Counted from the first letter of the stretch, positions 35,208 through 64,000 are shown. The stretch: 64,000 nucleotides of DNA from Penicillus capitatus (GCA_965649825.1 OZ287699.1:1-64000), one strand, 5' to 3'. A program made the numbers and translations. Notes: generated by a model from the letters alone, not told the origin.

Positions 35208-36423
35208 ATGGGCTGTGTCTGTTCCTCTATGAGAGACTCGGCATTTTACGAGGCCGCGAAGAACGGACGCACCGACGCCATTAATGTACTCAAAACACGG
35301 AAGAATTTCACGAACAATTCGATTCGTGGATTGCGTGTAGAAACTCGCTCGAATGATCAAGAACACGGATATAAAAATGTGGATGCTTGAATGGGAAGAT
35401 GATGACGGCAAGACCCCAATCATGATGAGTCTAGAACGTGGCCACGAGGAAACCACTCTGGCCGTATGCCTTACTGACACGTCTCATCTCTATGACTAAT
35501 GTAAGGCTGGTTCAGTTGCTGCAGCTTGGTGTAGATGTCAACTATATGAATAGCGAACAGGGATCCGTTTTATTGGCAGCCCTGAAAGCAGAAAATCTTG
35601 CATTGGTTTGTATCCTCCTTGAACGTGGTCTGTATCCTGCCTCTCGTCTGAAATGTGGAGTGTGTGTTGGTGCGATCAAGGTGCCTGCCCATTCTTGAAA
35701 ACTGCCAAAGGAATGAGTGCATGGGACTATGCTCTCGTCAACTCCCGTAATGCCCCTCTCCTTCGAGAGTTTGAAAGATACGGCTATGCCAGCGGCCTCA
35801 TCCGCTTTCAAGCGAGTTTTCATTTCTGGGTCACGCCGTACGATGGGTCAGTTATCTAGGTACCGATCACAAATCAGGCAGTCGATGAGACTCAGTACGC
35901 GACGCATGCCTGGCAACGACTCTGGGCATCCGTCGTTCCAGAGTACTCTGTTCATCCCCAAGGACATATTTTCGTCAGAAGGATGCTGTACGTTTTCCAA
36001 CATTCAAAAAGCTTCACTCCAATGTGCGTTGCTGAATTGGATGGCGCAATAGCAAGAATAACTGAACGAGATGACGAAGGAATGACGGCAGCACTGGTAA
36101 GTGCATCCCATTCTCCATCCACCTTTGCGTCAAGACATGGCGCATCTGTCCAGGATTTGCCAATCCTACCTTACGAACTGAAAGGTATTGCCTCCGTCGT
36201 CACACGAAACAATGCAAGACTGTGCATCAAAGAGTTCAATCAAGATAGCAAGTTCCTGATCACCTTCTTAAATGCATGCGATGGAATGTCGTCCGCAGAG
36301 CTGGATCTCTTTAGTTTGGACAGACGAACTGCAGACAGGTGGGTTAGAAACATCGAGCGTGCATCCGCCCCATCACACAAATCAATGACAGTGTCCGAGA
36401 AGTCTTTACCGTCAACACAATGA
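35208..36423 (+). CDS. XBAT35-like ankyrin + PH-like protein, paralog A (no RING; MGCVCS N-terminus)
   Basis: AFYEAAKNG, LEWEDDDGKTPIMMS, GACPFLKTAKGMSAWDYA, FERYGYASG, WQRLWASVVP, MLYVFQHSKSFTPMCVAEL. Stop at 36421-36423 with no Cys motif. Confidence 0.8.
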
Positions 36424-36709
36424 CTCCGATTTTTGATGTGCATTGGACCATCTTTCTACTGGAGGCATTTTTCTCATTTTGAGACATTTTACTGGGTTAG
36501 TAGATGTTGTTTTGCATTGGCTGACCTGTTGTACACGATAATCCGCATTCTTTCTCAACTCATGTCGATTCTTATAAATGCTAAGTCATACATTTGCATC
36601 TACAGACGGTGACCACATGAATGCTGCACGATGTCTGTACCTTTGTGTATGTAAGTGAATCCTGCCGCCTTCTGATAATCACAGCACATGGGGTGATGTG
36701 ACTGAACAA

Positions 36710-38361
36710 ATGTCGTTCGCCATTTTGCGGCGAAACCTCTCTTGTGTCCTTTCCAATCTCCAGATCCTTCGTTTACCTGCACAAAAGAAGCTTGGCTGGC
36801 CGGACTCACTCCACTGCCTGAGGTCACAGTCGACACTGACGACACCTCTGCTTCTTCGCGACTATATTCAACATCACCTCTACGATCCTTACACTGGCTA
36901 CTTCTCTCGCCAAGTGAAGATTGGAGGGAAAGAGAATCGAGGACTGTCGACACCTATCAACTTCAATCGATTGCTGGACGAGGACGATTTCCAACTCTCT
37001 GTCAAATCCGTCTATAAACAAGGTGGATCGGGCCGAACGTCTGCGGTCAACATGTCATGCGCACATAGCGACGATGTAGGTTATGGATCTTGGTTGACAC
37101 CTGTTGAACTGTTTCGTCCTTGGTATGGGTATGCCATCGCAGATCACATTTTGGCGAAAGCAACTCAACATGGCACCATAAATCCTCGATGTGTGGAGAT
37201 CTTTGAGATTGGAGGCGGCAGTGGCACCTGCATGATCGACGTGCTTGACAGAATCCATCAAAGAGACCCTGACATCTACAAGAAAACGACGTACACGTGC
37301 ATCGAAATCTCCAAGAGGTTGATCGAGACACGTGAGTGGGACAGCCTGCAGAGCAGTGCATGTCTGTGCAGATTGGTCGATACGCAAGTGGCACGAGCTA
37401 AGTCAGCAGGGTTAGATGAATATCGCTGGACAGTGATTCATGCAGATTTTCTGTCGTTGGACGAAGAATTGCCATCCAGTGGTGTGCTTCACTCTTACCA
37501 TGACCGTCATTAATGTTGATGAGATGCTGATGCGCAGAGGAACGCACTTTTGTGTTGGCATTGGAGCTTTTGGACAATTTGCCCCACGACAAAGTGATGT
37601 TCGATGACAAAAAACAATCATGGGAAGCCGTCATCGTGCCAACGACGGAGAAAACAGGCGAACGCCTCAAGAAGACGAAACAAGTCGTGGACTTTGTGAT
37701 GAGTTTCTCGTATACGGAAAGGAAGACGCTCAAATCGGAGACGCTGCAGGAACTCTACCGCCCTGCGTCAGATCCTCTCCTGCTCCGAATGATCGATGAG
37801 ATGCAAGAACTTGAGGAAACTTTCGTGAAGAAGGAAAAGGAGAAGGATAAGAGTATGTTAGATAGTGTCCAGAATATCTTGTTGGGTTATGGAAATCTGC
37901 GTTACTCGAAGACTGGAGTGCTCACCCCAGCATCAGCTGTTCGGACGAAGCAAGGAATCGCCTACATTCCGACAGGGCAGCTGCGATTTCTAGAAGCCCT
38001 TCACAGATGCTTCCCCTATCACTCTGTGTTGATCTCGGATTTTGATTCGCTGCCAGGACTGGTGTTACCTGGCGCTGGAGGACCTGCCGTTCAGTCTCTC
38101 GGTTCAGGTCATCGCATCTGCGATCGGAGTTCCTATCTGCTGCCACCGAAAGTCTCGGCCGATATCTTCTTCCCAACAGATTTTATCTCTCTCCAGCAGC
38201 TCTACGAGAAAATCACCGGCAACTCGACCAATGTTTTCTCTGCTAAAGAGTTTTTTGCTCCATTCGATGAAAGTCTGCGTGGCTGTCGGACGTTGAGTGG
38301 TTACTGTCCGCTGACTGAGTACTATTCTAATACTTCCTATCTCGTCGAGACGGATAGATAG
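36710..38361 (+). CDS. NDUFAF7: SAM-dependent methyltransferase, NDUFAF7/MidA family, mitochondrial presequence
   Basis: LLLRDYIQHHLYDPYTGYFS, TPVELFRPWYGYAIA, EIGGGSGT, YTCIEIS, LALELLDNLPHDKV, SDFDSLP, DIFFPTDF. Confidence 0.88.
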
Positions 38362-38433
38362 GCAATGAATCTTATCATCCGTCACATCTGTTCTGTCAGA
38401 ATTCGCGTAGCTTACTACCATTCAACCGGCGAA

Positions 38434-39311
38434 ATGTGTGCGACGGAGTGTCGTTTGCTGAAGGGATCTGTCGCCTTTGCTGCGCAGACAACCTTGGCCT
38501 TGTGCATTCTGGGTTCCCTTCTGTACAAACGGTGCGTGCATACGAGGCACACCGTTTCCTGTTGAAAGAGGATGGGCAGATAGACAACGAGAGCAACCAA
38601 AGCGCCCGCTACGCATCTGGGCTCTGGACGTGTCAAAGCAGGCAATCAGTGCCACAACCTGTCACATCGTCAATCTCACTTTTGCCATCATGGCTTATCG
38701 GAATGTCTCGTCCGAAGATGAGACAGTCGGGGCATCCGAATGCTCTTGGTATTTCGTTCAATTCAATGTGGACAATGTATTGGGCGTCCCACTGACCATC
38801 TTAACACACACAGTGATCCTGACATGTGCAAGGGCATACGCTGAGCGACCCGTCATCAAGAACAGGAATGCAGAGACGGAGCGCATTTCGTTCCTGGAAA
38901 TTGTCGCCAGCTGTGGGAGTTACGGCATTCCACCCAAAGCAAGATAGACGCCGTCGACTAGACTGTGCTCTGATCTTGTGAGCTGCCTAGATTTCGTGGT
39001 GGGCTGCTCAAGTATTGGAATGGATCATTGCTGTTCTCGCTGCCAGGAGCGTCAGTGGATGTCTCGTCGTTCTGCTGTCGGATGTGGCACTGAAGCATGT
39101 TGGAGCTTTGGTCGACGGCCTTTTCTGTGGCTACCCTGTACTGCATCTGTATTTTGCAATTGTGTTGTATCCTTTGATGGGTTCGATGATTGTGGCCTGG
39201 ATTCTGGACGGACTGCTTAAGAAATCGAACAAACCTACACAAATGCAAAGCCCTGAACTGACAGAGCACATTCTTGATTGCACAATTGAATGCGAAACAG
39301 TGGATTGCTAA
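38434..39311 (+). CDS. STIMATE/TMEM110-family membrane protein, paralog 1
   Basis: CRLL..QTTLALCILGSLLYKR|QREQPKRPLRIWALDVSKQ, ECSWYFV, CGSYGIPP, LYFAIVLYPLMGSMIVAWILDGLLK. Confidence 0.85.
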
Positions 39312-41255
39312 TGGAATGTATTCGAGTCGAGCCTCGCAGAACTCGAGATTAGTATTGGGATAGCCAAAACTAAAGATTTGCATGTTTAGGGTCTGTTTGG
39401 CAAATTTCTCATTTCTCTCAACGACATTGATCTTATGCATTTACCAAATCTATTTGACGTGCTGTTACGTGTCGCCAACAAAGCGATTGGACATTTATTG
39501 CCTTCATGCGAATCTCGCATTCCAAGAAGTGTGATGAAAGCATGACGTTGCCACGCTGTGTCCAGCGATAAAATCCGGCTACGACTGTCTCTTGAGTTTG
39601 AGAAGTAATGCCTGTCTTGCCGCTTGTAAATGTGGTTCTTACCTAAGGAATCTGAGAAAGCATCTCCCCGGCCTTCGCTATGGATTCCTTTTTCCTGTGT
39701 ACTGTCCCGACACAAGGAGAGAATCGCTTTCGGTGTAACGGCCGGTTGTGCTTATGTAGTATTCGGCATCTCACCATGTCTCAAAGCCTTTTCTTAGCAT
39801 GAGCGAGCGGTTTGCCATTTGTCTGTTTCTCAACTCTGTTCTTCTTCCTCGAAAACGACGCCTTGCGATTTGGGAACCTCATATGTGCTCAGGAGAAAAC
39901 TATGAAGAATAAGGCATGGATGGTAATGACATTAGGTTGCAGGCACCAATGTGACAGAAGGGAGCGAGTTTCTAGACGGAACGTCGTCTCGCAATATATG
40001 ATGCGGAGTCGTTCGTCTGAGCATAAGGCTCGATTAGCTAAAGTCGCAGTGACCAGAGGATCAACCAGATACTGGATGAAGCTGGTGGCAGAGCCACTTG
40101 CGCTCTTCCGGCTACTTGAACTTCTGTAGAAGTTCCGATCGAAGCTTTGAAAGAGTTCTCAGTTCTCTAGGCAAGACCAAGGACTGAGGTGAATATTTTG
40201 TTGTCTGTTTGCTTATCGAACTCGCATAGCGTTCTGTGTTCTGTTCTTGACTCTCTTGCACATTTTCTGCCTCCGAACTCTAGTTGTAACTTGATTCTCC
40301 AAATTTTCCCGTTTCGTCCCGAAGAGCACGCTGAGCCACTCTCACGAACTCCGATTCCTGCCTTGAAGCAAAAACTAAGGACTTCCGTTGTACAGAAGAA
40401 AAATGGCTGATCAAGAGAGATTCGCAAGAGTACTCAGCGTGCAGGCTCAGAAGAAGTGGAGTCCTCCCAACAAGATGTGCCTCGGAGATCTGAATGGAAA
40501 CGACAAGGCTTGTCTCATTCTCAGGAAGGAAAAGGTTCATACGGCCTCCGTTCGAATTGCCTAAGCGACACCAGAGAACAACGCTTGCGTTGACGAGCGC
40601 GTGTCGATGTTAAAGAAATACGTCGTGGGGACAGACATCTTTGCGAACGATGGGAACCACATACCGAAACAGACAAGTATTAAACGACGACAGATTGACT
40701 GGTGAACGGAAAATTCTATGTTTTTCGTTCGAGCAGTCACACACGTCTGCGTTAAAGCCAAATTTGATGTCCAGCCGACGGTTTGCTGTTAGAGATTCGA
40801 CAATCGGTACGCCGCGGTCACTGTAGAGGCCTCGCCGAAAGACGTCCGGCGTCTACAAACGCCCAGGGCTTCGGGTGTGGATATGTCGTGTGATTCTGAA
40901 CTCTTACTCACGTTGCGAGGCAAACAAAAGCCACGCATGAGAGAAGTTAAGCTTCGCTGATCAGCCACATTCTCGCTTTCTATCATTGCAGACGGTACAC
41001 TCCTTTAGACTGCGATTGTGAATTAAGATGCCCTGTTCATGCAAAGATTGAACTATGAGAGAAATATTATCACAGAATACTGCAGCGGTCACTGTCCTTG
41101 TCCAGAGCGCCTCTCACGTTGAAGCGAGAGCAGATCCATGCTTCAGACAACTACCGCTGCAAGAACCCGAGCGACTTAAACAGAATGAAGAAACTCGATG
41201 ACTGAATAACAGAACGACATTCATTCACATGTCTCATGATGCACCTATCATCCAT

Positions 41256-42699: not shown

Positions 42700-42784
42700 T
42701 ATCCAAAACACGTCGAAATGCACTCAGTCATTGAAGCATCTAAAAGAAGAACGCTCTACAACGCTCGCCATCAGAATATTCGTC

Positions 42785-47148: not shown

Positions 47149-48702
47149 ATGGGTCAGTGCTGCAGTAAGCCGACGGAGACGACGTGGGAAACAAAGGACG
47201 TTATGGAGTTCGACCAGCCGGTCCACCAAAACCAACACCAGCCCTCGAAGAAGAAGGACGAATTCGGCATGGGAAACCACTTCGAGACTCTGCATCTTCT
47301 GGGCGAAGGCGGTTCTGGAGAGACATGGCTTATGAGGGATAGAGAAACGCAGGAGCTTGTTGCCGTCAAACTTATTCCTCGTCCGATTCCGAAGGCGCTG
47401 CATCAAATGCTTCTTCAAGAAATTCTAATTCAGCGCGACTTGGGTCAGGGCCATGTCAATATCGTCACTTCGAAGGAGGTCGTTCTAACGCGAACGCATC
47501 TTGCATTCGTGTTGGAATTCGTTTCTGGAGGAACATTGACAAAGTACGTATCCGACAGATGGTCGACTGTTGGAGACCGTAAAGGACTCTTCCTCTCAGA
47601 GGAAGAGGCGCGCTTCTTCTATAAAGTAATGAGAATGCATCGAGGCAGAGGTCGATAGTCAAAGAGTGTGTGTTTGTTTGTGCGTGTAGCAATTTTTGTC
47701 AGCCGTTGAATATTGTCATAAGCACAAAGTGGCGCATCGAGATCTGAAACTCGATAACACATTACTGGATGAAAACGATCCGCCCTACGTCAAAATCTGC
47801 GACTTTGGATTTGCAAAGAACTTTGAAAGCAATTCAAACATGTTCACGCACATCGGCACACCGGTGTACATGTCCCCTGAAGTGAGAACCCAATGCACAG
47901 ACGGCTAGAGATGGGCTGTGGACTAAGTTGCGTGTTGTTGTGTGGATGTAGCTAATCAGCAGCAAACGAGGTCGAATGGGTTACGATGGTCAGAAAGCAG
48001 ATATCTGGGCAAGTGGTGTGCTGCTCTTTGTGATGCTGTTGGGTATGTTCCCGTACGAACACAGCGAGCATCCTGATCCGAATACATCTGCGGCTCAGAT
48101 TGAAGTGTGGTGAGGCTGATGCATGATCACAACCTACCACACACTCTAAATGTATGTCTGCCATACATTCAGGCTCCAGCAAATAAAGAGCAAATGGAGA
48201 GAGAATGGACGTGTCAAAGACGCTGCCAGAAGGCTATCTCCCGAATGTCGTGACTTGCTGGATCACGTGTTTGATTTGAATGAGAAAAGACGGCTGTCGA
48301 TTGCCGGTGAGTTGTTCCCAACAGATGTCCCATCTTGGTCACTCACTCTTTGTCTCCTGCAGACATTCGTTCTCATCCCTGGTTTGACAAGCCGATGTCT
48401 GAGAAATACGAACGCGCTTGGAAAAAGCTACAACTTGCCCAAGAACAGATTAATAGGGAGATAGAAAGCGGTGCCTTCAAAGTACACCGATCTGCATCTC
48501 CACGTCCTGTGTCCAATCGTGTTATGTGTGTGCGTTCTTTTAACAGAGTCCGCAGAGAGATGAAGCATTGAAGGATTTAATGTCCCAAGCTGCCTCTGTT
48601 GGCCGACCAGACGACGATGCTAAGAGGATTTCGATGACCAACATTCATCGATCTTACAGTTACATCCGAAAGGATCGTGGAATGTCGGAAATAACCGAAT
48701 GA
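47149..48702 (+). CDS. SnRK2-like Ser/Thr protein kinase with MGQCCS lipid-anchor N-terminus
   Basis: LGEGGSG, VAVK, HRDLKLDNTLL, KICDFGFAK, GTPVYMSPE, ADIWASGVLLFVMLLGMFP, HPWF. Confidence 0.92.
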
Positions 48703-49187: not shown

Positions 49188-51067
49188 ATGGGGAATAAGC
49201 AGTCGCTTCCCGTAAACGAAGCAATTTACCACGCTGCCAAAACTGGAAAATCAAGAGAACTCGAGGTCGACCAACAATGTCACCTGGCATACCTCACCAA
49301 GCAGCGCTCGTGTGTGTCCCTTTTAGGCGTTCTTGAGAAACGCCCGGCCCGAAACGTCTCCGGAGAATTTGCTGGAGTGGCAAGATGAAGAGGGAAGGAC
49401 GCCATTGATTGTCGCCGCCTCAAAAGATCAAGTTACCTGTGTCGAACTGGTGGGTGATCCCGTTGCGAGGAAGAGGGGATAGATGGGTTCTATCCACCAT
49501 TGCCTCTCCCTCCCTCCCTTGGTAACCACGGTGCACAACAGCGATGTGCGTTGCATTTAGCTTTTGAGATATCGAGCCAATGTTCAACATATGAGTCGCA
49601 GAAGAGAAGGGGGAACCGCATTGCACGAAGCCGTTTTCCGTCAGTGCAATCGAGCGATCATCGAAGCTTTGTTAAGATATGGTCCAACCACGCCATTTCG
49701 ACTGACGGCATGGTGAATGGTCTGCTGATGTTGTGCAGGTGCCAGTCCGTTTGTGGAGAATATTTCTAAGTTTACTGCCATGGACTACGCCATCGTGAGA
49801 AGAGATGCGGGTTTACTAAGGCGGTTGGAGCGTTGCGGTTACTTCTCTCAGTACATGAATTTGCGTGTTCGTCGCAATTTTGGTCTTTCAAAAGGCTGGG
49901 CACCCAAGTGGATCTCTATCTTTCCCCGCTACGGTTGCCCTCTGCGCCCCCGAGAACCCATTCGTCGTGTCATGCTTGTCTACAACGATGCCAGAAGCTA
50001 CGATCCCATCAGTAAAGTCTATCTGGATGGCTCATCTGTCCGACAAGTGGTGGGAGATAACGGTCAGCCCCAAGCTATGCTGGTAGGATCCACGCACACC
50101 CCCGTATGGATGGATCCAATGTATCTCTCTGTCTGTATACAGGCATTGCATGCTTCTCATATCCAACCAAAGATCATTTCTGTTACAAGAGATGCCGTTG
50201 GCCAATGGATAATCAATTTCAGATCCTTCGAGCAAGATCCATCCCATGTGACGAATTTGATTCAAGCTGTCAGTGCTCAGCACGATATCCGAGTACAGGC
50301 AATAGAAGGAGGCGAGTGTCTGTGTTCGTCGTTTAGACAAGTGGTATGAGACGTGGCGTGGGTATGTAGAGAATGACGAGCAGTTGGCCAGGAGAATTGA
50401 GCGACATGGATCTTTAGAAACACCTGTGCACACAACGGAACCGCCAGTACTTCAGACTACGCATTCAGCACCACCGATAAGATCTGCTCCAGCTGTCGAG
50501 TACGCACCACTCCTTTCACAATGTCTGAAAAGCCAATGGATGTATCGGCAGCCGTGACGTGGAGGAGCCTGTGGAGCCACAAGAAGTCATGTCGCCAGTT
50601 CGTGAAATGGAGGATGACGAAGAAGACATCGATGCCGAAGCGGATGCCCCATCAGCTCCTCCTCTGCCACCCGATTACTACGAATCTGCACCCGGAGGTA
50701 GGACACTATGTTGCTGTTACGGTTAGATAAAGACGTCTCCTTGTACTCAGTCGAGTCGCATGTTCCGCATGTTCCACCCGAACCCAAATTCGATTTGCTG
50801 GGTCAAGACTCGAAAGAACTGGTCGAAGACGAAGGTCTCTGTGTCATCTGTCTGGACAAGCCCAAGACGGCTGGCTTTGTACATGGATCGAGGTACCTGC
50901 CCTATCACTCCTTTTGAGATGCCGATGCCACATCGAATGTCTGTGTGTGTAGTATGCATCGCTGTGTTTGCAAGGATTGCGCACTTGCCGTGCAGAAGAA
51001 TGGTAATGGACTTTGCCCAATGTGTCGACAGCCGATCGACCATGTCATCACAAATTTCTTCCTCTAA
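49188..51067 (+). CDS. XBAT35-like ankyrin + PH-like + MDM2-type RING E3 ligase, paralog B
   Basis: MGNKQS, AIYHAAKTG, LEWQDEEGRTPLIVAA, GGTALHEAV, GASPFVEN, WAPKWISIFP, then CVICLDKPKTAGFVHGSSMHRCVCKDCA..CPMCRQPIDHVITNFFL*. Confidence 0.88.
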
Positions 51068-51193
51068 GCCGCTTTTTGATGTCCGACACACAACTCAGCT
51101 GCGAACAACGGACATACATCTGTCACAGCCTCTACGTATACTTGCATTCAGAGCATGTGTGCTTTAATCAACAGACATGATCATTGAATGTTG

Positions 51194-54100
51194 TTATAAC
51201 AGACATCCTATCCCTTTACCATTTTCACTCCGTTGATCGGACCATTTCCTACACAGCTGCCGATCGCTGCCAAGAACACGGAGACATTGTGTTGTGTGCC
51301 AGACCTGAATGGTGTTACGGAAGGGCACAATCAGAACAACGAGCAGTGCAACGAAGACAGGCCAATACGAGGCCTTCTCATAGTCCACATTCTCTGCCTC
51401 TTCTGACTGTCCACATTCCACCTTCATGTCTCCAATATAGATCTAACCAAACGGTTCATCGATCGCATTCATGAGTAGATGCAGAGACGAATAGAGTGAC
51501 CTCTTTGCGAGAGTGCGCGTCGAGAGCTATGGTTTGGGATGGCAATGAGCATGTGGCTTCCAGTCCCTTGTTCATGACTTTGAAGATGTACTTGCCAGGA
51601 TAAGTCAGGTCTATCTCGAACCATCCATTGAAGTAGGGCTCGAGAATCGACACCGTTCTGGTGCCACCATCGCTGCGCACCACTCTCATGACATGGATTT
51701 CTGTCGCTGTCAAATGCTCTGGATCCACATCGACAGCGCCATTCACATTCACAGTTCCATCATCCCTGCAAGCAGACATCCCAAACGTCAAATCACGCTG
51801 TCGATCAGGGCATCGACTTGTAGACAACGAAATGGACGTCTTCGAGATCTGTATAGTCTTGAAGATGGTTGTCATGTTGAATCGAGGCTTGAATGGAAGA
51901 TGGCCAAGCTGCTCGAACAGATCCCACTGTCAGGACAGAGATCGTATACTTGATCGAAGGTCTAAGGTTCTGAAGATGGAATTGTCCTTTCTTGTCGGAC
52001 TGGCAAGACTCTTCATCATCTTCAGCAGAACGGGCAAGGATGGACACATCAGATACAGGCTAAAGGGCAGGCACATCCATAAACGGCACTGCCAGAAATG
52101 ATTCGCCTGACCGAACCTGTCGGTTGAGACTGGTCACGTTGCCAAAGACAGAGAAGCCTGTTCGTTTTGCCTCGAACTGGACGCGTTCGTCCAAAGTGCC
52201 ATCGACTTCGATCTGCACAAACGGTGGATCGAAATTGTATTCCTTCAGCATCGGCTTGATGTAGTAGGAATCTGCGGGAAGCTTCCAGAAGGATACCACA
52301 CCATTGGCATCGGTCTGGGCATTGCTGCGATGTTTGTGCCGAGATCCAGCCAGAGCAATTAAAACGCCGCTCTTGTCTTCTTTGTTCATGGAGACGATCA
52401 CTTCCATTCTGACAAGCTTTAGGCAGACCACAGAAAAAGAAATGTTCTCCCCGTCTATTTTCGAGATAACGAATTCGTAGCCTTGCTTCTCGATGATGAT
52501 ATCGACATCCGTGTCAATGTCATAGTATGGTCCAAATGAGAAGGTTCCTGTTGCAGATGATGTGACTTGACCCACAACGACGCCCTTCAGCACAAGCTGA
52601 ACATGTGCATCCTGAAGGACTGGCCGAATGGTCCCAGTCACAAACGTGCCATGCCTCGCCGAAAACGGCTGTAGTTGTGGCGGACACTGGATGCCGGAAT
52701 GCGAAAACTCCAGTTTCTGGGGATTGAAGAGAAGGCTCTCGTGCAATGGAGTGATCTGTGGATTCATAAGTGAGAATGGATGAGTCCTGGATGGATGAAG
52801 AGGTCATTCTCTACCTCATAGTGTTCGCCGAGGATACCACTGAAGTCCATGACCATCTCTCCTTGCTTCGATCCGGGAACGGCAACAATCTCTTCCACGT
52901 GATCGGCTGTCGTCGATTTCACACGTGCGGTGATCTCTGCCGTGTCCATATCTGAGGGCAGAAGGATCGTGCCTCTTGCTTTGAAACCGGAAGCAGAGAT
53001 GGCAAGAGTGGCTGAATCCGTAGGATCAATAACCATATTCTGGCAACAAACGCATTTCCATTCCCAACGAATGCATGCCTTGTTTTTTCACGCACTTTGC
53101 TAAATGTAAAGCATCCGGATTCTTTAGCGTTGACAGTGTGCGGCTCGTCAGATGTGAAACAGAGATGATGCACCATGCCTTCTTTGTAGAAACCTGAAGC
53201 CACACGAATGTCAGATGACCTGAGATCCCAACCAACCAGATCTGTTCACGACCATCTTTGAGATACTGCGTTCCGGGTCCATCAAATTGCAGCTCTGCTT
53301 GATGCGTCAACCTACATCGAAAAGGGTCAGGTGTGGATGGAGTGGTATGACCGCTTCCTTACATCAGTTTCTTTTCCAGACCAATCTGCTGAAAAGGCGG
53401 CGCTTCGAGATCATTTTCGCCGAGAGCAATTTTCATTTCGGTCTCTTTCCAACACCATCCGTCTCGCTGAATCTGTCATTCATAGAAAACGGAAAGGGTA
53501 AGGGTTCGTAGGGGAGAGATGTCATGTCATGTACTTCCAAGTGGTACTCCTGAGGAGAAATGCTCTCAAAGACGCCACGATACGTGTTTCCATCTTCGGA
53601 GCTCAGTTTCAGGCCAGCAGTTACTGTCAGTGTTCGCGTAGCTCCATCGTCCGGAAATCTCAGACGACATGAGACATCTCCCCACACAGACTGCGGCAGT
53701 TTCTCTATGGCGATTGCGAGATGCACTTTCTTCTGGATGAACTTGATGCCATCCAACGGCTGGTCGACCACATGTATTCTCCTGGACTTTGGTGCAAACA
53801 CCACCTCACTCATGACCTCCATTGTGTAACGATCGGGTTCGAGCATCAAGCAGAACTCTCCATCGTTGTCAGTATGGATTGTCTCAGCAATCTCAACAGA
53901 TACCACTGTTGATCGGCGTCATTGCAGGAGGCAACGTACTCCAGACGATCGCGTCAGTCGGACGGTGTATATCTGCCGTTCGTCGTCCTCTTTTCCAACA
54001 ACCGATCCACAGACAGCGTATGCAGATGGAGAAACAACCGGAACCTCGTACTGAAAAGGAGTAAACTGCAGCAGAACACAGCACACGTCGCATAAAGACT

Positions 54101-55664
54101 GACAGATATCGTGTGATCAACCCTGAGGCCTGTCAGAGACTCAAACACCATTCCTTCCTTGCCAAAGTCAAGATCGACGGCACCATCTCCAATATCGTGG
54201 AGAATATAAGATCCATCCTCTCTCGACGTCCGTGCTGCAAACAACGGTTGCTTTGCAGATAAGAGGGTCAGAAGAAGTGGTGCCCTACCGTAAGCCTTGT
54301 CTTTGGTGGTGATCTGAACATCCGGTATGCTCTTGTGTGTCTCTCGATGCTGGACGATGCCTAAGACAGAGAAGGCTGTCACTTCTATCGCTCTGGTAAT
54401 CTCCGAGTCTCCCAATGAAACGTCCACTTGCATTTCTGCCGGAGAAAAACGATAGACGCGCTCTTTGTCGAGACGGGAACTGCCGCAACATATCTATCAC
54501 TGTTACTCAGTGCTACTGTAGGTACCTTGGAACGATGATGTATTGGCCGCACGGGATTCTGTCAAACGCGAAACGGCCCTCTTCGTTCGTCTTTGTCATC
54601 TTCAAATCCTCTCTATCCTTACTGTCTTCTACAATGAATCCCAAAAAGAGTGAGATAAAAAGAGTGATGACAGGAGGACGGACGTGAAGATCGAAGTAGC
54701 TGAATGTTGATATCTTCTAGCGGCTGTCCTTTCCAAGCAACTGTTCCTGTCAACCTGAAGCCTACACGTGATATCCATGATGCATGCTAGAATACCGTCT
54801 CTGGTGCAAACCTTGGACAGTGTAGGTCGATTCGAGCACGACAGACTCCCAACCGAGATGAACAGGGATGCCATCAACAGGACCTTGGAGATCCCATACG
54901 GGATGCTCCGCACGAACCCGGTATTCTCCAGGCATAACACCTAAAGGCGTCCAAGAGCATTCCAGTCACATCTGCCGCATTTACGATACTATCGAACGAG
55001 AACGAGCCATCCTTGTTGCATGGCACTTGTGTCAACGGCTGTCCACCTAGTTGAGAGACGCTTATGCCGATCTCCTCCTGTACTGGCCGAGTGGTCTTGC
55101 CTTTCTGTGAGAGGTGTACTGTGATGGAATCCATTGCTGGATTCGATTGATGCAAACAGCCATTCGATTCCGAGGCTCGAATCTTTCCATGAATCGAAAA
55201 TCCATTGACTTCAAAGATCACATCATGGCCAGCGTTGCACTCGGACGCTCCACAATCGATCATTTTTTGAACAGGCGTAAAGGACCATCCTTGAAATCCC
55301 TTTGGCTTAACGATGTACTTTCCTTTAGGCAGGGACACATTTGGCACATCCCTCCCGTTCTTATGAGGTATGATGTGACACCTGGCTTGCTGAGAGGAAT
55401 GAAGAAGTATCCATCCGGCGCACAATCCGTGTCCATCAACCGAGCTCCACTCAAGGAATGCACTTCTACTTTCACTTGTGTGAGCTTAACATTGCTGTCG
55501 TCTGTGCTGGACAGGGCGACGCCCACCTAAACCCGATAGTCCTCAAAAGCGAGACACATCTACGTGAATACTTTAATAAATCCATGAACTCCGAGCAGAT
55601 CCTCTGCAGAAGAGGGTGCTGCGAGTGTAAGAGTGAGAAGAGTGAGAAGCGCCGTTCTGCGCAT
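51194..55664 (-). CDS. NOMO1: Nodal modulator (NOMO / BOS complex subunit); last exon uncertain
   Basis: Signal peptide MRRTALLTLLTLTLAAPSSA, then GVHGFIK, DCAPDGYFFIP, KGFQGWSFTP, CNAGHDVIFEVNGFSIHGKI, GTFSFGPY, YYIKPMLKEYNFDP, RTGFSVFGNVTSLN, and a C-terminal TM. Confidence 0.9.
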
Positions 55665-55936
55665 AGTGGGGTCGGCGGGCGGCAGCGACGTCTGCACTTT
55701 GAAGTCCGGGAGTCGTCGGATTGATGATGTGACATGATGTATAACACCATACGATAGCTCATAGTGTCACAGTAATGCAACCGACATCCAAATCACTTTC
55801 AAAAGGACCAATGCCGTTAGTCGACAATAAAAAGTCGAAGCGCATTGGACGGAAATGAAAACTTCCTCAGATCCTCGAATTTAAGAATAGCGATGATGAA
55901 GATAGGTAGTACACAGAGGAGCCACAGCCAGTGAAG

Positions 55937-57625
55937 CTAATGCAGTCCTGTCAGAATGCGATCAATCTTTCTGCGGCAGATGGGACATCGACTTCTCTCT
56001 GACAAATAGACTTGGAAGGCACAAGAATCGCATACACAGCGATGAACACTGTATGGCACAAGATGCAAGAGGGATTCCATGAGCTGAAGCTTACCTATCA
56101 CCATGAAGAAATCCAGCAGATTGCGGTTTATCCATACACACGACACAAATACCACCATTGATATCATTGTCATCCGCTGCGCCGTTGTACACAGAAATGT
56201 GAGCGGCATTCACTGGACCATACAGAAAGAGGTTATTGATAGCTATTTTTTCAGATCCCTGAACGCACCATCCACAATAGACATAGGCGTGGTGTTCTGG
56301 CATGGATCATTTTCATTCTCAGCAATGCTTCTGAAGATGGACACAGGAATATGTGAAAAGGATGTCGGACTCCGTTGACAGCAAGCAAGTCACCTGATGT
56401 CCTGGGAGATTGGCTCGTCTTCTTGAATGGTGGGATGGATCAGTTGGGGACCTTCGGCATTCACTACACCGTCCGTTATCTGTCTCGATTCAGCGAGAAA
56501 GAGATTGGGGATCTCACATTGCAGTTGTTGCTGAATGATCGTTTCGACCTCTTCCTCATTGATCACCCTTTTGAGTCTGTTAAGATTGGCAACTCCATTC
56601 CGAAACGTCGCGCTGAGAGAAATCGACCAAGCAGAGTTGGTCTCTTTGGCGGAGGCAACTCCGATAGGTTGACGGTGATTTGGCCCCAATATCTATCAGA
56701 CAATCACCATGCATTCCCCAAAGATGGATGGCTGCGGCCTTTCGACCACTCTTAATCTGTCCGATGCCAATTCGGCATGAGCATTTGTCAAGTCAATATA
56801 AGATACAGGATTCCGCGTAGAATAGCCATCGTATATGATCATTGTCTTTTTGAGACATTGCATGTGATCTGGATCTGATGTGGTGTACAGAGGAACAACA
56901 GTGACCCAACGGGACAGCCATGACACATCCGCATGCAAAAACTGCGTTCGCACCTACATTCGCCGTATTCATGCGTCTGAACAGATGGAGCATTTGGCGT
57001 GGACATACCATCAATTCATCGGCAAAGTATCCATAACGATCAAAAGAAATAAGCCATGGGGTGTATATGTTCCTGGGGGCATTCGCGATCAAGCACAGAT
57101 CCAGTACTGTTCGATTATGTGTGTTCCTGACAAACGGATTTGCACCTGACAGCAAACATGTGCAGCAGAAGTTGATCTATCAGCAGATACCGTGTCTCAA
57201 GAGCGCCTCGACGATTCCATTGGAACGCCATTTATAGTAAACAGCCTCGTGCAACGCAGATCCGCCAAAATCTCTTGCGCTGATGTGATGTACATTAACA
57301 TCATGTCTCAACAACTAAGGGGAACACCCATCCTGCTAACAACTGTTATTCAGTATTGCGATTCTGCAGAACCTCTAGGACGCAATTGACTTGTCCCTTT
57401 TGCGCGGCAATGATGAGAGGCGTCCTTCCTTTCCCATCTTGCCAGTCGACCAAACGACGACGGCTCTCCGGATCGTCCACTTCCGATAAAAGCGACTAGA
57501 CACAGGTCGGAGCTTCAGAAGTCTTTCCGGATAGCTTCCTATCGCACTTGTATCCGTACGCTATTGCCTTTGCGTGAGGCTTGATAGACAGCAGAATCGT
57601 GCGACCTCGACACTTCGTTTCCCAT
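55937..57625 (-). CDS. XBAT35-like ankyrin + PH-like + MDM2-type RING E3 ligase, paralog C
   Basis: MGNEVS, AVYQASRKG, VDWQDGKGRTPLIIAA, GGSALHEAV, GANPFVRN, RWVTVVPLY, then CVVCMDKPQSAGFLHGDSVHRCVCDSCA..CPICRRKIDRILTGLH*. Confidence 0.88.
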
Positions 57626-58565
57626 TCGAAGAGACAATTCTCGTTGCGCTTTTGGCGCTGCAAACACGAGGCTTTTGTTCCCGAGGCTCCTTTAGAAGAC
57701 AATGAGCTGAAGGCCAAGCAGCAATGAAAGTGTTGCGATCATTGTATGCCATCGATGCAAATGCCATAAAAATCTCGTAAAGGCGACGTAACGATTGAGA
57801 CCATCCGTTTGACGTCGCATCCAAACCAGCGGAATCTCCCAGAAGAGATCCCAACAGAAGATTCCAATCGCGGCAGTAAACACTTCCAGAGATCATACAA
57901 TTCGCATCGCTCTTACTCCAATCTCCTGCGAGTCCATCTGATGACGGTTGTTGTTATGTGAGAAGATGATAGCGTCATCGTGATCTGTCGGAACATTATT
58001 ACAGGAAGGATGACAAGAGAGAGGTTGACAATGACATGTGTGATGGAGAGAACAATGACAAGGTCGGCAGTCGAATTCAATGGGACAGGAGCAGAAATGG
58101 CCGAAAGAAATGAAGAATTTGGATCATTGGATCTCTCTGCAGTGAGCAGCTTCTTCGGCGATTCCGTTTCTCTCTGCGAGCCTATGAACAGGGACGCGTA
58201 GAAAAACTGTTAGGGCGCATGCACCGTATGCGCTTTTGAGAGTCGGATTGGCGTGAGACGACGAAAACAGAGAGAATACTGTTCACGACCGTTCGCATTT
58301 CCTCGACGAAGAGTTTCTTGACGGGACCAGAATCGAGGCGAAACGTCCTAACCGTTGGTGGACAATCAAACTTGAGCATTCAGTCTGTGCAGGAGTCGGT
58401 CGAGTGAAGCCACAGCCCACGGCATGGAGTAAAGGTCGGAGTCAGGAACAGTTCTCCTGAAGGAAACGGGTCCCGCGATTCTCGTGGCCTTGTCGACTGT
58501 CTTGGTATGACGATGACGTAAGGCGTGCATTCCTGCTCGGCACCACGTATCTGCTTCCGCGCGAT

Positions 58566-59105
58566 ATGCTCCTTCCGTTTTTGAAAGCGGACAAGGAACA
58601 AAATTCGACGCGGTTGTTTAGCAAAACACATTCATATATTGTCGTCGATGGCGTTGTCACTCATATTCTCGACATGAGCGCGTTGCCGCCAGCGGACCCC
58701 GTCGAAGACGCTTTCGTACGATTTTGCATTTCAGACAAGCTGCCGTGCTTTCATTGCTGGAATGCTTCTACGATAGAAGAGTGCAATACGGTCATGAATT
58801 TGGAACGCGTCCACGGAAAGCGGTTATCGAGACATATTTGGATTTCGATGGGTAATAAAAACGATCGAGCAAAGTCGCACTTCGAAACGGCGGCTTGGAC
58901 AGTGAAAGCGACAGTATTGAACAGATGTGCAGCGTGGTGGCATCACGCTCGTTTGCTTTCTGTAGCAGACCGTCTGGAGTCCACCATGGATGGATTTCAC
59001 AAGAGATCACTTCTTTTGCGTCTGACACGACTTAAAGCGTTGTCGAATGAGAAACGACAATTCGAAAAGAAGACGAATGTTGTGAAGATAGACACACTCC
59101 TGTGA
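58566..59105 (+). CDS. Hypothetical protein (intronless ORF; probable start MSALPP at ~58674)
   Basis: 179-aa ORF with protein-like composition. No domain recognised. Confidence 0.3.
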   Translation: MLLPFLKADKEQNSTRLFSKTHSYIVVDGVVTHILDMSALPPADPVEDAFVRFCISDKLPCFHCWNASTIEECNTVMNLERVHGKRLSRHIWISMGNKNDRAKSHFETAAWTVKATVLNRCAAWWHHARLLSVADRLESTMDGFHKRSLLLRLTRLKALSNEKRQFEKKTNVVKIDTLL

Positions 59106-60081
59106 TCTTCAGCATTGGAAGTACAGTTGGCCACCCGTACGACTGCTCGTGTATTGCACGTTCATCGATATGGCTTCTGGATTGTTGTGTACGACACGTG
59201 CCGTGGAGTGACTCTCTCTCTCTCTCTCGCTTTCTTGTCATTATACTGTGGGTAGGGGTTGCCTCGCTTCCGATATCATGAAATCCTTGAATGCATCCGG
59301 GCGGTTCAGACGATCGACATCGATGCGTTTCGCACTCTTGCAGCATGTAAGAGAAGACGGCCGCCGTGTCCATTTCGTCAGACACAATCGAATTCGGAGC
59401 ACTGTCTCCATAGACTGTATTGTCTCGGTATGAAAAATCTGGGAACTGTACTTGCTACATGCTCTTCCCGACACCACATCTCAACACTCCGACACCGCGG
59501 CGTGAAGGATCATTTGCGACTGTGCTGTCAGATAACTCTCATTCGCCAAAGAAGTCTGCGTCCGTGCGAACTGTTTCCTTCCTATCTCTGCCACCGAGCC
59601 GCTCGCGGATCCGTGTTGTTCACGATTCCGCGAGCTACTGCTGCGCTATCTGGCTGTACAGGCGCTGTACTGGATAAGCGGTTGGTGCCCTGGCCTGCAT
59701 TCATAGCAACCAATGTACTCTTCTGGCCGACGAAGCTCGCAAAGCGGTTCTTTCTTCACGGACATGCACAATTAAACTGTCACCAGATATTCGAAGGGAC
59801 GGGTCTCTTTTCGCGTCGTCGTGGTGAGCAAACAGGTACCCTGTCTTGAGCATGTGCCTTCGTTCAGGACACTATGTCTCTATAGGATACCTCTATTTGC
59901 TGCCTCGTTGTCTGGGGAGTAAGGAGTCAGAGTTGACGGTTGCACCTTCTGCACCTAAATCCATCGTGTACTGCTCCTCCGTCTTCTCCTCTCATTCGGA
60001 GTTCGTCTCACGACACGCGTTTCCCCAAATCCTTTCCCTCGACCCAAGCCTCGGAAGACTCGGAAGGTAGTCCTACGCCTC

Positions 60082-61833
60082 ATGGGTTCTGCAGTTTCCG
60101 TACCTCCACAATTAGCCATATATCAAGCGGCCTGTGCTGACCGGCTCGATGACATAAAAGTACATCCCGAACTCAGATGACGACGGAGCTCTTTAACAAC
60201 GCCCCTGGTCGCAGAATGCTTTTTTGGACGAGTTTGGAGAACAGACTCCTGCTCGATGCCTTGATTGGGAAGATGAGCAAGGATACACGGCTCTCTCGAT
60301 CGCCGCCCGAGAAGGGCGCGCTGCTTGCGTAAGACTGGTACGTGTTTCTTATCCTTGTACGTTAGAGTGCCGTTATGCTCTCTGACAACGTCATACCGAG
60401 ACAACACTGGCCCTGTGCTCAGTTGCTTGAACTCGGAGCAAATTGTCGACACTCCAGTCGGCGACATGGAAGAGGGACAGCATTGCATGTAGCTCTGGGA
60501 AGCCCGACTCTCTGCGTTTCAGTCATAGACTGCCTCCTCCTAAACGGTAAGATCACACCGTACGCGATTCCCCCACAGATGCCCCACATGGCTTGGCAGG
60601 TGCAAATCCGTTTGAAGAGAATGCTCAACGTGTGACGCCGTGGGAGATGGCGGCGGCCAAAGGAGAGCCGAACATCCTCAGAAAGTTTGAAAAACAGAAA
60701 GCCTTTTTTGCGCATCAGCTTCGCGTCAAGATTCATGGAGACACCGCCCAAGATCGACGAAGATGGGTTTGTGTCCTTCCACGATACACCTATCGCTCCT
60801 CCGGCGTATCGTATCAAACCTTAGCATCGACGTCGCTTTACGTTTTTGACTCCATCCAGTCAACAGCTCCTGGAATCAAGATGAACTTGAGATGCATAAA
60901 GAAACCCACCATCCGCCGAACAGCATCAACCGTCAAAGTCTATCTGGTCCGTATCGCCGCCATTCTCGGCAGCTTATGATGTCGACTGCTCGTGTGTCAC
61001 ACAGTGTCCTGTCAGCAACACACATCCTTCGTATCGAGCTGCCGAGTTGGAGTTCGTTTTTGATATGAGCTCTGACCATCAGCTTCTGTTGAATCACTTC
61101 CTCAAAATCCTCCACAAAAACATGAACATTCCATCAGCTTGGCGGCGAGGTAAGGATGCTGTGCCTACATGCATTGCACCTGAGTGTCCATCCTGCTAGA
61201 CGACATGGTTCCAGATGTCGGTATGGATTCGGCAAGTGATATTTGCGTGCTCAGAGAGGAACGCAGAGAAGGAGCAGCACGCAGCGAACGTATGCAGCAC
61301 TCTGCTGCCACGGCTTCAAGATCAAAGTCATCGTCGTGGTCCGATTCAAGGTCTGTCTTCGTACCCATCTCCTCGCAGCCGATCTCTGAGAGATGTATGG
61401 CGGGTGGCAAAGGTCATTCCACATTGGTCCACTGACTCCGTGGGATACCACACCAGTGATCCGACACAAATCACTGCGCCGATCTGTATCCGGTCCGCTT
61501 TCACTCGAGAGCACTGAGAAGCGTAAGGCGGACGCCATCGAACTGCAAGATAGAGCCTTGAAGGCGAGATCGCATCCAAGGGACAATGGACATGGCAACA
61601 GTGGACGTTGCGTGATTTGTCTTGAGAGACCTCAAGAAGCGGGTTTCGTCCACGGCTCCAGGTGACCCCTACTGCCTGAAAACAAACAGACAGTGTTCAC
61701 CATGACTGTGTATGTACGTAGCATACATCGTTGTGTATGTCGACAATGTGTGCGTCATTTTGAAGGACAGGGCAAAGAGAAATGTCCCATTTGTCGTAGA
61801 GCGATCGAACACGTTGTTACCGATTTTTACTGA
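60082..61833 (+). CDS. XBAT35-like ankyrin + PH-like + MDM2-type RING E3 ligase, paralog D
   Basis: MGSAVS, AIYQAAC, LDWEDEQGYTALSIAA, GRGTALHVA, GANPFEEN, RRWVCVLPRY, then CVICLERPQEAGFVHGSSIHRCVCRQC..CPICRRAIEHVVTDFY*. Confidence 0.88.
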
Positions 61834-62690
61834 TACCTGACAGACATTCTTTCTGTCGTGGACAGTCGTCAGTCAGTGGGTGATATTCTTGGATTCTCTG
61901 AACGATCGTTTCTTAGAAAGAAGGATTCAAACTAATTTTTTTGTGTCATGACTTTTCTGACATGCAGAGGGTACGTGGCAGGTGAACATGGTCTGTACAT
62001 GACAGCAATCTGCCACCCACATTCCTCGCTGTTTCCAAGTTCTATACGGTTAGCATTTCACACGTCTTTTCTGACACCTTAGTCTTTCAGCACTGACCGC
62101 ATCCGAGCGTTCAAAATCATCCAATGGGTTTGGTTTCCACTGATCGTTCAGGATGAGCACAGCTGGGAGCAGCACATTGGGCCTGTCTGCCTTGCGGCAG
62201 GCCAGATGTGCCATATCCGGTCCCTGTGTCCGGGGTATTCTAGGAAGATCACTTTGTGGACTCTATTGATGATGTTATCGTTGTCGTCGTTGTGAAGACT
62301 GTCTTATCATTTGATTCGGATCGAATACCTTGTAACAGATCCTTGTTCTCTGGATCCAATACATCTGCGTCACCGTTTCGGCTCGAGATCGCTTTTTAAA
62401 TAGCAGGCAAACAGACAACACATGGGATCAGTTAAGGAGATTGGGTCCGGAGAAGGCAGATTTCAGAGCAGAAAATAGCAAAGGAAACAGAAACCTAAGA
62501 TGGACGGACGCCAAGATGCACGGATGATAACGAATCAGACTGCAGAAACACATCCACCGAGAATCAGCTTTATTGCTGCTAACTAGGACTATTCGGTAAC
62601 GCTTGTTTGCATGTGTACTGCAAGGTGTTCCAACATTTCTGCCATGGATCGGCACAAACAAAAAGAGAAGGCATCATCCATCTTTCTTGC

Positions 62691-64000
62691 TTAGCTGGAT
62701 CTTGACGAGTTGCTGGAAGGGAAATCGTTCAAATGTGTGTGTGGTCTTGTGTTGTATCTGGTTGGATGGACGACACAGTAAAAAGAAACATGCACGTCTT
62801 TTTTAAAGGCGATGTGGAGTGAAGGGTCTCTCCTTGAGGGAGAACCCGTTCCAATGAAATATTGTTAGACCTCACACAGTCTCGGAGCAACAGTCACAGG
62901 GGTCTGTGTTGTTGTGTTCGCTCTTGTCTGTTTGTTCAACGATCTCTGCTTTTAATACATCGGAATCTATCGAGGGCGCACTGGACAAAGAAAATGAAGA
63001 CATCTCCTGCCTAGCCGAAAACAAAACGGATGCCGAATCCCGTATTCGTCGATTCTCTTTCCAGATGTCTGAAAGACAGAACACACGACATCAGATGGGA
63101 CGGCAGTCCATAGGGGAGGGAGTCGTTACTTCTTATGCAGGCACTGGTGCTCAAGCCGTCTTCGATGTTGATGATTTTCACCAGACGCAAACACGTGTCG
63201 TCAGTTGAAGTAAAAGACAAGCATAGATCAAACAATGATGATCCGGCCGATTTATTAGTCACGGCCCAATTCGACGTCAAAACTGAATCGATTGGAAGTA
63301 TCTGCAACAGACAGACATGGCATAGGTGTGAGAGAGATGTCATTGGAATCGGCAGGTCGGTGAGTAGGTACCAATCGCACACTGCTTCCGTTTGGATCCT
63401 GCTGGAGTTCGGCTTTGGCTTCGTAGAGGTCCATCTCCAGCACTGGTTCATCGTGACCGGATTCATAGATGTGCATCGTTTTGCTGATGCGGCGAAGGTC
63501 CTGCAGTCGATCACAGCACGCGTAACGCGGAGCAATGAACACCAGATAGTCTTTCTCCAATCCAATTGTTTCCTCAGTTCCCTGTAGATGCACAGCAACA
63601 ACGCAGTGCGTTACTTCCTACTGAGAGGGCAGTGCAGATGCGCGTTACTTGAATTGTCAGGCTTCCTTTCAGCACCTCCTGGAAGAGTAGCTCTTCAGTC
63701 GTCATCAAACTACGATCACCACCACTGAGATCAGCCGCGGTAACGCGATTGCTATTCTCCACAAGAGGATTCGAATCTAGAATCGATCGGGCATCGCAAC
63801 ACAGAGCAGGCCGCCAAGGGCTTACGGTATTTGAGAAGAAGTTGTATGATTTCATTTGGCAGTTGGTTTGCGATGGCAAGATGCAAAGCAGTTCCTTTAT
63901 TCTTCTGTCTGTTTGTATGATACACATTCGCGCCATGTCGTAGCAACTGATGACACAGCACAGATCGATCCGGTAGGCCTTTTGAAAGAAGAAGGGTACC
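62691..64000 (-). CDS. XBAT35-like ankyrin + PH-like protein, paralog E (5' end outside window; no RING found)
   Basis: LLRHGANVYHTNRQKNKGTALHLAI, SNPLVENSNRVTAADL, YLVFIAPRY, KTMHIYESGHDEPVLEMDLYEA. The 3' exons end near 62.7-62.8 kb with no RING motif. Confidence 0.72.

Follow-up and report, generated by a model that had tools for sequence, protein, structure and literature searches.

A probable local expansion of XBAT35-type ubiquitin-ligase genes with MDM2-like RING domains in a green alga

In a 64,000-nucleotide stretch of DNA from Penicillus capitatus (GCA_965649825.1 OZ287699.1:1-64000), referred to here as the window, we found five homologous genes encoding proteins of the type of the plant ubiquitin ligase (E3) XBAT35. 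Three of these paralogs end in a RING domain in which the putative zinc ligands follow a C2H2C4 pattern. The XB3/XBAT family is usually described as C3HC4 and as a land-plant family, and the C2H2C4 pattern is elsewhere regarded as characteristic of MDM2 and MDMX. The region is likely part of a locally expanded XBAT35/XB3-type ubiquitin-ligase gene cluster of an ulvophycean green alga related to Bryopsidales, the organism being placed near this order because the best named match of one paralog (B, see below) was to Caulerpa, with 54% identity. New here are XBAT35-type ligases with a C2H2C4 RING, whereas the family is known and a local expansion is in itself ordinary. In the full-text literature on C2H2C4 or MDM2-like RINGs with algae, Arabidopsis or Chlamydomonas we found no report of this variant, and one survey listed no XB3/XBAT member in Chlamydomonas reinhardtii or Volvox (PMC3596331).

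Five paralogs sharing one architecture

The window is eukaryotic, with 47-50% G+C from about 6 kb onward and many short spliceosomal introns. Gene models were built by hand from three-frame translations and the DNA, and were then refined against relatives. The modelled introns are 44-111 nucleotides (nt) long and GT-AG, except for one probable GC-AG intron in paralog B. Five copies lie within 29 kb: paralog A (35208..36423, plus strand, 316 amino acids (aa)), paralog B (49188..51067, plus strand, 455 aa), paralog C (55937..57625, minus strand, 400 aa), paralog D (60082..61833, plus strand, 442 aa) and paralog E (62872..64000, minus strand, 275 aa visible, with its 5' end beyond the window edge). 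They were 25-32% identical in pairwise BLASTP comparisons (E values from 1e-9 to 1e-59; 4e-27 for A versus B). A previous sequence-only reading had placed five XBAT35-like paralogs at these positions, and the spliced models, BLASTP and a scan with a family hidden Markov model (HMM) over all six frames of the whole window agreed with it. The HMM scan recovered the five loci and no sixth one in the window. A candidate sixth copy at about 33.4-34.4 kb, suggested by a GALPF string and a weak tblastn match, was rejected as the family HMM scan was empty there.

The common plan consists of an N-terminal Met-Gly (A to D), two to three ankyrin repeats and a middle domain that is predicted to form a PH-like beta-sandwich, followed in the full-length members by a disordered linker and a C-terminal RING. 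In Pfam searches B, C and D passed the curated cut-offs for both ankyrin families and zf-C3HC4_3, and A and E gave nothing but ankyrin repeats. We thus regard A and E as truncated derivatives and not as full XBAT35-type members. Three further shared motifs proposed by the sequence-only reading held for part of the family. The pattern MG-x3-S is present in A (MGCVCSS), B, C and D, the 5' end of E lying outside of the window; GAxPF is found in A to D and is replaced by HSNPL in E; and [RK]W-x2-hydrophobic-x-P is strictly kept in B, C and D, while A has LW and E lacks the Trp. The N-terminal Met-Gly of A to D would serve as an N-myristoylation signal.

The proposed conservation of intron positions was confirmed. 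Introns at 26/0, 67/0 and about 107/1 (position/phase) are identical in A to D, the third one being present also in E, and a phase-0 intron inside the middle domain is common to all five paralogs. A phase-2 intron after HG(S/D) interrupts the RING of B, C and D. After refinement, every one of the eight introns of B (phases 0, 0, 1, 0, 1, 2, 1, 2) recurs in C at the same position and phase, and seven recur in D. One additional phase-0 intron, close to where the middle domain begins, occurs in each of A, C and E.

The RING domain

All three RINGs read C-x2-C-x10-H-x4-H-x3-C-x2-C-x11-C-x2-C. The RING of B is CVIC-x10-H-GSSM-H-RCV-C-KD-C-x11-CPMC-RQPIDHVITNFFL, the two putative ligand His being H415 and H420 of the 455-aa model. 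The ends are as previously read, with B finishing in NFFL 13 residues after the last Cys, and D and C finishing in DFY and GLH, respectively, each 12 residues after it. Also borne out, by the verified Arabidopsis sequence, was the difference between the C3HC4 RING of XBAT35 (CVPCGH) and the H-x4-H of B, C and D.

Assignment to the MDM2/MDMX type was supported by comparison with solved structures, among which MDM2 and MDM4 were the first matches of all three RINGs. By phmmer, B matched MDM2 at 1.9e-10, MDM4 at 1.4e-6 and cIAP2 at 1.8e-5; D matched MDM2 at 2.3e-8 with MUL1 as the next family at 3.2e-4; and C matched MDM2 at 6.7e-7 with the next family at 5.3e-4. Judged by these solved-structure E values, the lead of MDM2 over the next non-MDM family is about 1e5 for B, 1e4 for D and 1e3 for C. 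The alignment of B with MDM2 (printed for B only) is ungapped across the eight ligands and extends through the 13-residue tail, with a single one-residue gap in the loop that precedes the final Cys pair. The two His of B fall on H452 and H457 and the Phe-Phe of its tail on Y489 and F490; at the latter two positions D has Phe-Tyr and C has Leu and His. Further likenesses are the ligand spacing (C-x2-C-x10-H-x4-H-x3-C-x2-C-x10/11-C-x2-C) and a CP-x-CRQPI motif found in both. In an alignment of 14 family members both His and all Cys ligands are invariant, as is the His-Gly dipeptide at the position of MDM2 H452-G453.

The resemblance does have a general component. As a control, the C3HC4 RING of XBAT35 itself matched MDM2 at 1e-7, level with MEX3C, cIAP1/2 and MUL1, so that some of the likeness is common to the zf-C3HC4_3 clade as a whole. 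What is specific to MDM2 is added by the His and the longer loop. The short aromatic tail, which had been taken as special to MDM2, is not so: short aromatic C-terminal tails are a common feature of the dimeric RINGs of this clade (PMC7190642), the tail of XBAT35 is equally long, and a feature shared with the inhibitor of apoptosis proteins and XBAT35 does not discriminate the MDM2 type. Outside of the RING, the window proteins lack the p53-binding (SWIB/MDM2), acidic and RanBP2-finger regions of MDM2, with Pfam finding only ankyrin repeats and RINGs in A to E. By their domain content A to E are not MDM2 orthologs.

A second difference from MDM2 is an extra Cys two residues past the second His, invariant in 14 of 14 homologs, where MDM2 has Met. 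This Cys opens the alternative that His and Cys of H-R-C-V-C (H-x-C) are ligands 3 and 4, that the upstream His is structural only and that the likeness to MDM2 is convergent or superficial. The XBAT35 control fits with this alternative, since an ordinary C3HC4 RING that already matches MDM2 would need no more than the Cys-to-His change and a three-residue insertion to mimic it. The assignment would, however, leave a single residue between ligands 4 and 5, which is non-canonical, and it has to account for the invariant His-Gly dipeptide, the ungapped alignment of B with MDM2 across eight ligands and the top matches of C and D to MDM2 and MDM4. We therefore consider it improbable and prefer to read the domain as a C2H2C4 RING of the MDM2/MDMX type.

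Relationship to XBAT35 and the PSAP motif

That the proteins are XBAT35-like was confirmed by a family profile aligning with Arabidopsis XBAT35 over the full length. With hhalign, the profile of 14 members (positions 1-492) matched XBAT35 (positions 1-460) with a probability of 99.9%, an E value of 5.7e-33 and 422 aligned columns; the XBAT35 query sequence had been verified by exact look-up (Q4FE47 / NP_566724). When B was compared with XBAT35 by BLASTP, the E values were 2e-15 for the part from the N-terminus to the middle domain and 1e-8 from PSAPP to the RING. The algal family is collinear from end to end with Arabidopsis XBAT35 and XBAT34 and with tomato XBSL35, which form the two-ankyrin branch of the XB3 ankyrin-RING E3 ligases. 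Both sides start with MG-x3-S, continue with two to three ankyrin repeats, a shared middle domain and one or more PSAP motifs, and close with a zf-C3HC4_3 RING (Pfam) that carries a 13-residue tail, at similar total length (455 aa in B versus 462 aa). In contrast to XBAT35, His takes the place of Cys as algal ligand 3 and the loop leading to ligand 4 has three additional residues (H-G-x-S-x-H; FVHGSSMH versus VPCGH), B has one PSAP where two were reported for XBAT35, and the algal gene is amplified to a cluster with some copies lacking RING or PSAP.

XB3 membership has been based on at least two N-terminal ankyrin repeats together with a C-terminal RING, both of which are found in B, C and D, and on the C3HC4 ligand pattern, in place of which B, C, D and all retrieved chlorophyte homologs have His at ligand 3. 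Accordingly, by their sequences B, C and D are best described as XBAT35 homologs with a variant RING.

Both XBAT35 and tomato XBSL35 have a putative N-myristoylation site, ankyrin repeats, a putative ubiquitin-interacting motif (UIM) and a C3HC4 RING (bioRxiv 10.1101/2023.08.10.552820). In B, the place of the XBAT35/XBSL35 UIM is occupied by an ENDEQLARRIE helix. XBAT35 binds the UEV domain of VPS23A, a subunit of the endosomal sorting complex ESCRT-I, via two PSAP motifs (PMC9400068). The PSAPP motif of B (50649..50663, plus strand, residues 355-359) is a candidate site for the UEV domain of ESCRT-I VPS23/TSG101. Among the 32 retrieved homologs of the family, 23 contain P[ST]AP and a further eight keep SAP; such conservation suggests that the link of XBAT35 to ESCRT-I is older than land plants. 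Within the window, A and E retain only ASAPS and SSAPS, and C and D neither. A functional analogy, and only this, exists with the animal E3 MGRN1 (mahogunin), a RING E3 with a PSAP motif that was also matched by the XBAT35 RING in the search of solved structures. MGRN1 binds the TSG101 UEV domain through this motif and ubiquitinates ESCRT-I (PMC9400068), but it has no ankyrin repeats and another domain order.

The middle domain

As a proxy we modelled an ortholog of B, P0001, with AlphaFold2 from a 14-sequence alignment. The model shows ankyrin repeats at residues 1-138 and, at residues 143-264, seven strands (143-153, 158-172, 183-189, 199-202, 207-212, 218-223, 237-249) and a C-terminal helix (256-264), with a predicted local distance difference test score (pLDDT) in this block of mostly 86-95. 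A further helix at 280-291 had a pLDDT below 50 and the RING block one of about 73-77. A single-sequence AlphaFold2 run of the middle domain (mean pLDDT 39) was unusable. Going by the predicted topology, the middle domain would be PH-like.

Distribution across green algae and local amplification

The sequence-only reading had proposed a lineage-specific set of ligases. This was not borne out, as the same RING is found in all chlorophyte homologs retrieved and only the expansion in copy number is local. The pattern G-[FL]-[VL]-H-G-x-[ST]-x-H-[RK]-C-x-C is present in each of these 32 sequences, which derive from Caulerpa lentillifera, Ostreobium, Bryopsis, Coccomyxa, Apatococcus, Scenedesmus, Hariotina and Chlamydomonas sp. 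UWO241, among others. They begin with MG except for a few 5'-incomplete or divergent entries, and most contain P[ST]AP. The architecture is thus in part already standard among chlorophytes, in that RING, MG and PSAP are widespread there. By sequence, a full-length XBAT35 counterpart with His as ligand 3 and the MDM2 loop length is present in several green-algal classes. A search with the whole-length family profile against 1.84 billion representatives was swamped by giant ankyrin-repeat proteins and yielded eight true members; no streptophyte member was seen among its results, the query including the ankyrin region.

For all named homologs compared, B was the closest paralog of the window, and B is 53-60% identical to its full-length relatives, including the Caulerpa lentillifera protein. 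Because the homologs share RING, MG and PSAP and lie closest to B, we take B as the conserved ortholog and the C2H2C4 RING as the norm of the family in Chlorophyta. Judged from its sequence, B is the conserved chlorophyte XBAT35 ortholog with every module kept, including the short acidic LARR helix and PSAPP. The local feature is the amplification, in which PSAP disappeared from C and D, both still with a RING, and the RING from A and E.

The amplification extends past the right edge of the window in a sister species, of which a 790-kb contig (L003; ENA ERZ26696514, ctg303740) was available from a metagenome assembly in the European Nucleotide Archive (ENA). On this contig, at 13400-20546, E is followed within 7 kb by three additional copies in the same orientation. 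Of copy 1 (about 14.0-14.8 kb) only ankyrin repeats and the beginning of the middle domain are seen. Copies 2 (about 15.6-17.3 kb) and 3 (about 17.8-19.6 kb) have the same RING type, reading GFVHGN...HICVCETC and ending in MKIY, and GFAHGN...HWCVCKNC and ending in TDFYAS, respectively.

The family offers a natural pair of Cys and His at one ligand position, which could be used to probe the effect of His on RING stability, dimerisation and choice of the ubiquitin-conjugating enzyme (E2). The algal proteins further provide an outgroup with which to study how the MDM2 RING arose. A broader proposal is that the C2H2C4 RING is old and not an animal invention, that it survived in the chlorophyte XBAT35 branch, and that in this alga it was amplified to at least eight clustered genes, whose RING-bearing members, among them C without tail aromatics, would form active/inactive heterodimers in the manner of MDM2 and MDMX while the RING-less A and E tune the system. 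We regard this proposal as a whole as unlikely.

Gene models of the individual paralogs

Paralog A (exons 35208-35285, 35341-35463, 35516-35627, 35681-35829, 35878-36096 and 36154-36423) consists of the MGCVCSS start, ankyrin repeats and the PH-like middle domain, and its C-terminus reads RASAPSHKS...STQ. Gly2 of MGCVCSS would accept myristate, and Cys3 and Cys5 are possible palmitate sites. The family HMM scan gave no RING downstream of A, and Pfam recognised ankyrin repeats only.

Paralog B (exons 49188-49265, 49327-49449, 49561-49681, 49739-50082, 50143-50311, 50370-50499, 50552-50697, 50751-50892 and 50953-51067) begins with MGNKQS (MGNKQSL) and combines ankyrin repeats, the PH-like domain, the ENDEQLARRIE helix, PSAPP and the RING, with Pfam matches to Ank and zf-C3HC4_3 (E value 6.9e-11). 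The RING is encoded by the last two exons (50751..51067), which translate to CVICLDKPKTAGFVHGSSMHRCVCKDCALAVQKNGNGLCPMCRQPIDHVITNFFL and are separated by the phase-2 intron after HGS. The probable GC-AG intron (50312..50369, plus strand, phase 1, 58 nt, AG|GCGAGT...TGTAG) was chosen on homology. Its removal gives AIEGENDEQLARR, which matches AFDGENDEALARR of P0002, and a phase-1 intron is present at the equivalent place in D and E. A model with a GT-AG intron at 50293-50341, giving RWYETWRGYVEN, was replaced after comparison with orthologs.

Paralog C (exons 57625-57548, 57495-57373, 57314-57191, 57145-57009, 56953-56750, 56692-56518, 56463-56394, 56330-56269, 56212-56095 and 56048-55937) begins with MGNEVS (MGNEVSR) and has ankyrin repeats, the PH-like domain and a RING reading CVVCMDKPQSAGFLHGDSVHRCVCDSC...CPICRRKIDRILTGLH. 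It lacks PSAP, and its tail is free of aromatic residues. Reading through 56517-56464 was dropped in favour of an extra intron of 54 nt, given that indels in the sister species at this place are not multiples of three.

Paralog D (exons 60082-60159, 60215-60337, 60423-60546, 60600-60946, 61005-61149, 61200-61350, 61413-61661 and 61722-61833) begins with MGSAVS (MGSAVSV), likewise without PSAP, and contains ankyrin repeats, the PH-like domain and the RING CVICLERPQEAGFVHGSSIHRCVCRQC...CPICRRAIEHVVTDFY. An intron at 61413-61456 was discarded on the same grounds, the sister-species indels there not being multiples of three either, and a different linker intron was adopted.

Of paralog E (exons 63946-63826, 63776-63649, 63581-63372, 63301-63130 and 63068-62872) the visible part contains the last ankyrin repeat, the PH-like domain and SSAPS and has the C-terminus CDCCSETV. 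The window edge falls in the intron preceding the exon 63946-63826. No RING was detected between E and D in the family HMM scan. On the sister contig the likely first exon of E begins with MDWIRQQ, ends at a GTGAGT donor and lacks Gly2. Considering this absence, E may not be myristoylated.

Selection, expression and remaining objections

The sister contig L003 is collinear with the window at 50693-63998, with 83.8% nucleotide identity. All inferred splice sites of C, D and E and of the end of B are preserved on it, and in both species the refined models of C, D and E have intact reading frames. Ratios of nonsynonymous to synonymous substitution rates (dN/dS) between the two species are 0.16 for C, 0.32 for D and 0.08 for E, and are lowest in the ankyrin, middle and RING parts. 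The RING of C has a dN/dS of 0.14 and its tail (ending in RILTGLH) is identical in both species; the E proteins are 96% identical. C, D and E are hence under purifying selection, which indicates working genes.

Two sequencing runs yielded intron-free contigs of about 1.4 kb, read here as cDNA, that encode full-length orthologs of the B type (P0001, 60% identity) and of the D type (P0046, 43% identity). The D lineage predates the split from the organism that yielded P0046.

An alternative interpretation of A, C, D and E would be that of decaying duplicates without a function of their own. Loss of the RING from A and E and of PSAP from C and D would be in line with decay, as would the two in-frame stops met when C is naively read through. 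The stops of C, however, sit within a 57-nt intron at a position common to all paralogs. An alternative genetic code was likewise rejected as their explanation, one of the stops being TGA and both lying within this conserved intron. Against decay are further the intact state of C, D and E, with all splice sites kept, in a species that has diverged by about 16% in DNA, their dN/dS values, and the transcript-like contig of the D type in a more distant relative. Decay is largely refuted for C, D and E, and very improbable as an account of A, C, D and E together. Working genes under purifying selection remain our interpretation of C, D and E, and a local expansion with constrained RING-less copies provides a modest case study for the diversification of an E3 family.

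Several observations weigh against the interpretation as a whole. The junction of exons 5 and 6 of B depends on the GC-AG intron chosen on homology, and the sister contig ends short of A. Zinc ligation by His is read from alignment, and the extra invariant Cys (H-R-C-V-C) permits the other ligand assignment discussed above. None of A, C, D and E contains P[ST]AP, which limits the putative ESCRT-I link to B. The PH-like assignment draws on predicted topology and on one non-significant match, to the SKAP55 PH domain (E value 0.6), lying on the start of the middle domain (GYL..K..W.KRW.V, or G-Y-L-x-K...W-x-K-R-W-x-V). The middle-domain profile had no significant match in Pfam or among Protein Data Bank (PDB) sequences, and when PDB structures were searched by fold with the full AlphaFold2 model, the top 50 matches were all designed ankyrin repeat proteins (DARPins) and other ankyrin proteins, which is uninformative on the middle domain.

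Proposed functions of the paralogs

By analogy, the mode of action of B is most likely that of plant XBAT35. The acyl group would hold the protein on an endomembrane, and B would dock through PSAP on the UEV domain of ESCRT-I VPS23/TSG101, and pass on ubiquitin from an E2 held by the dimeric RING, while the NFFL end of one protomer might steady ubiquitin on the other protomer. In RING dimers of this clade, the final three residues of a protomer pack against the ubiquitin held by its partner; those of MDM2 act in trans in this way, and MDMX supplies them in the heterodimer (PMC7190642). Aromatic residues at the ubiquitin-packing tail positions are kept in B and D, with Leu-His in C. C and D are probably sub-functionalised ligases, and the RING-less A and E may serve as adaptors or compete for the same partners.

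The sequence-only reading proposed combinatorial homo- and heterodimerisation, with C as a possible MDMX-like partner. In this model B, C and D, together with copies beyond the window, would form such dimers, and C would be inactive alone. Such pairing would agree with the RING type and 12-13-residue tail shared by B, C and D, with the use of MDMX tail residues in trans in the MDM2/MDMX heterodimer (PMC7190642), with Leu and His of C at the MDM2 Y489 and F490 positions, and with the constraint on C seen in its unchanged tail and low RING dN/dS. The analogy is loose, however, as MDMX itself retains an aromatic residue (F488), and RING dimer interfaces of this clade usually favour homodimers. 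A weak or partner role of C, and combinatorial pairing generally, are reasonable ideas by analogy, but a lineage-specific combinatorial system is not established and the proposal in full appears doubtful. An XBAT35-like function of B next to sub-functionalised C and D remains the reading we favour.

Other features of the window

An Rfam scan of the window gave no match. The first 6,000 positions (1-6000) differ from the remainder in base composition (63% versus 47-50% G+C) and represent a nested satellite. A 56-bp minisatellite, CACCA[CT]CCGTCGGTCGCCGGAGGGACCAAGGGTCCCCCCTTTGCTTCGC[AT]TCCTCG, forms arrays of 2-11 copies, which sit within a higher-order repeat of about 0.8-0.9 kb. Long open reading frames (ORFs) in this part are repeat artefacts.

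At 15913-17178 (minus strand) an unbroken ORF of 421 aa, among the few long intron-free stretches of the window, carries DEAD-box helicase motifs (AxTGSGKT, DEAD, SAT, HRIGRTGR). Three successive long ORFs at 19983-22572 (plus strand) are rich in short repeats, e.g. GGG(I/L)(F/Y)...N.A...GG(A/G), and look like a repeat protein of the parallel beta-helix or polymorphic-membrane-protein type. Immediately 3' of A, a gene at 36698-38361 (plus strand) with a GGGSG motif and a presequence-like N-terminal region resembles NDUFAF7/DUF185-type methyltransferases. The region between B and C (51400-55500, minus strand) holds a multi-exon gene, and its counterpart in the sister species showed weak-to-clear Pfam matches to NOMO_5th, NOMO1-like_1st and NOMO1-like_9th. 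Immediately 5' of B lies an intron-containing protein-kinase gene (47149-48696, plus strand). The order of kinase followed by B was also found on the intron-free contig L001 (78-1295; Joint Genome Institute (JGI) sample 3300008031), with 63-89% identity per exon, and the kinase on this contig begins with MGQCC, which is another N-terminus of the acylation type.

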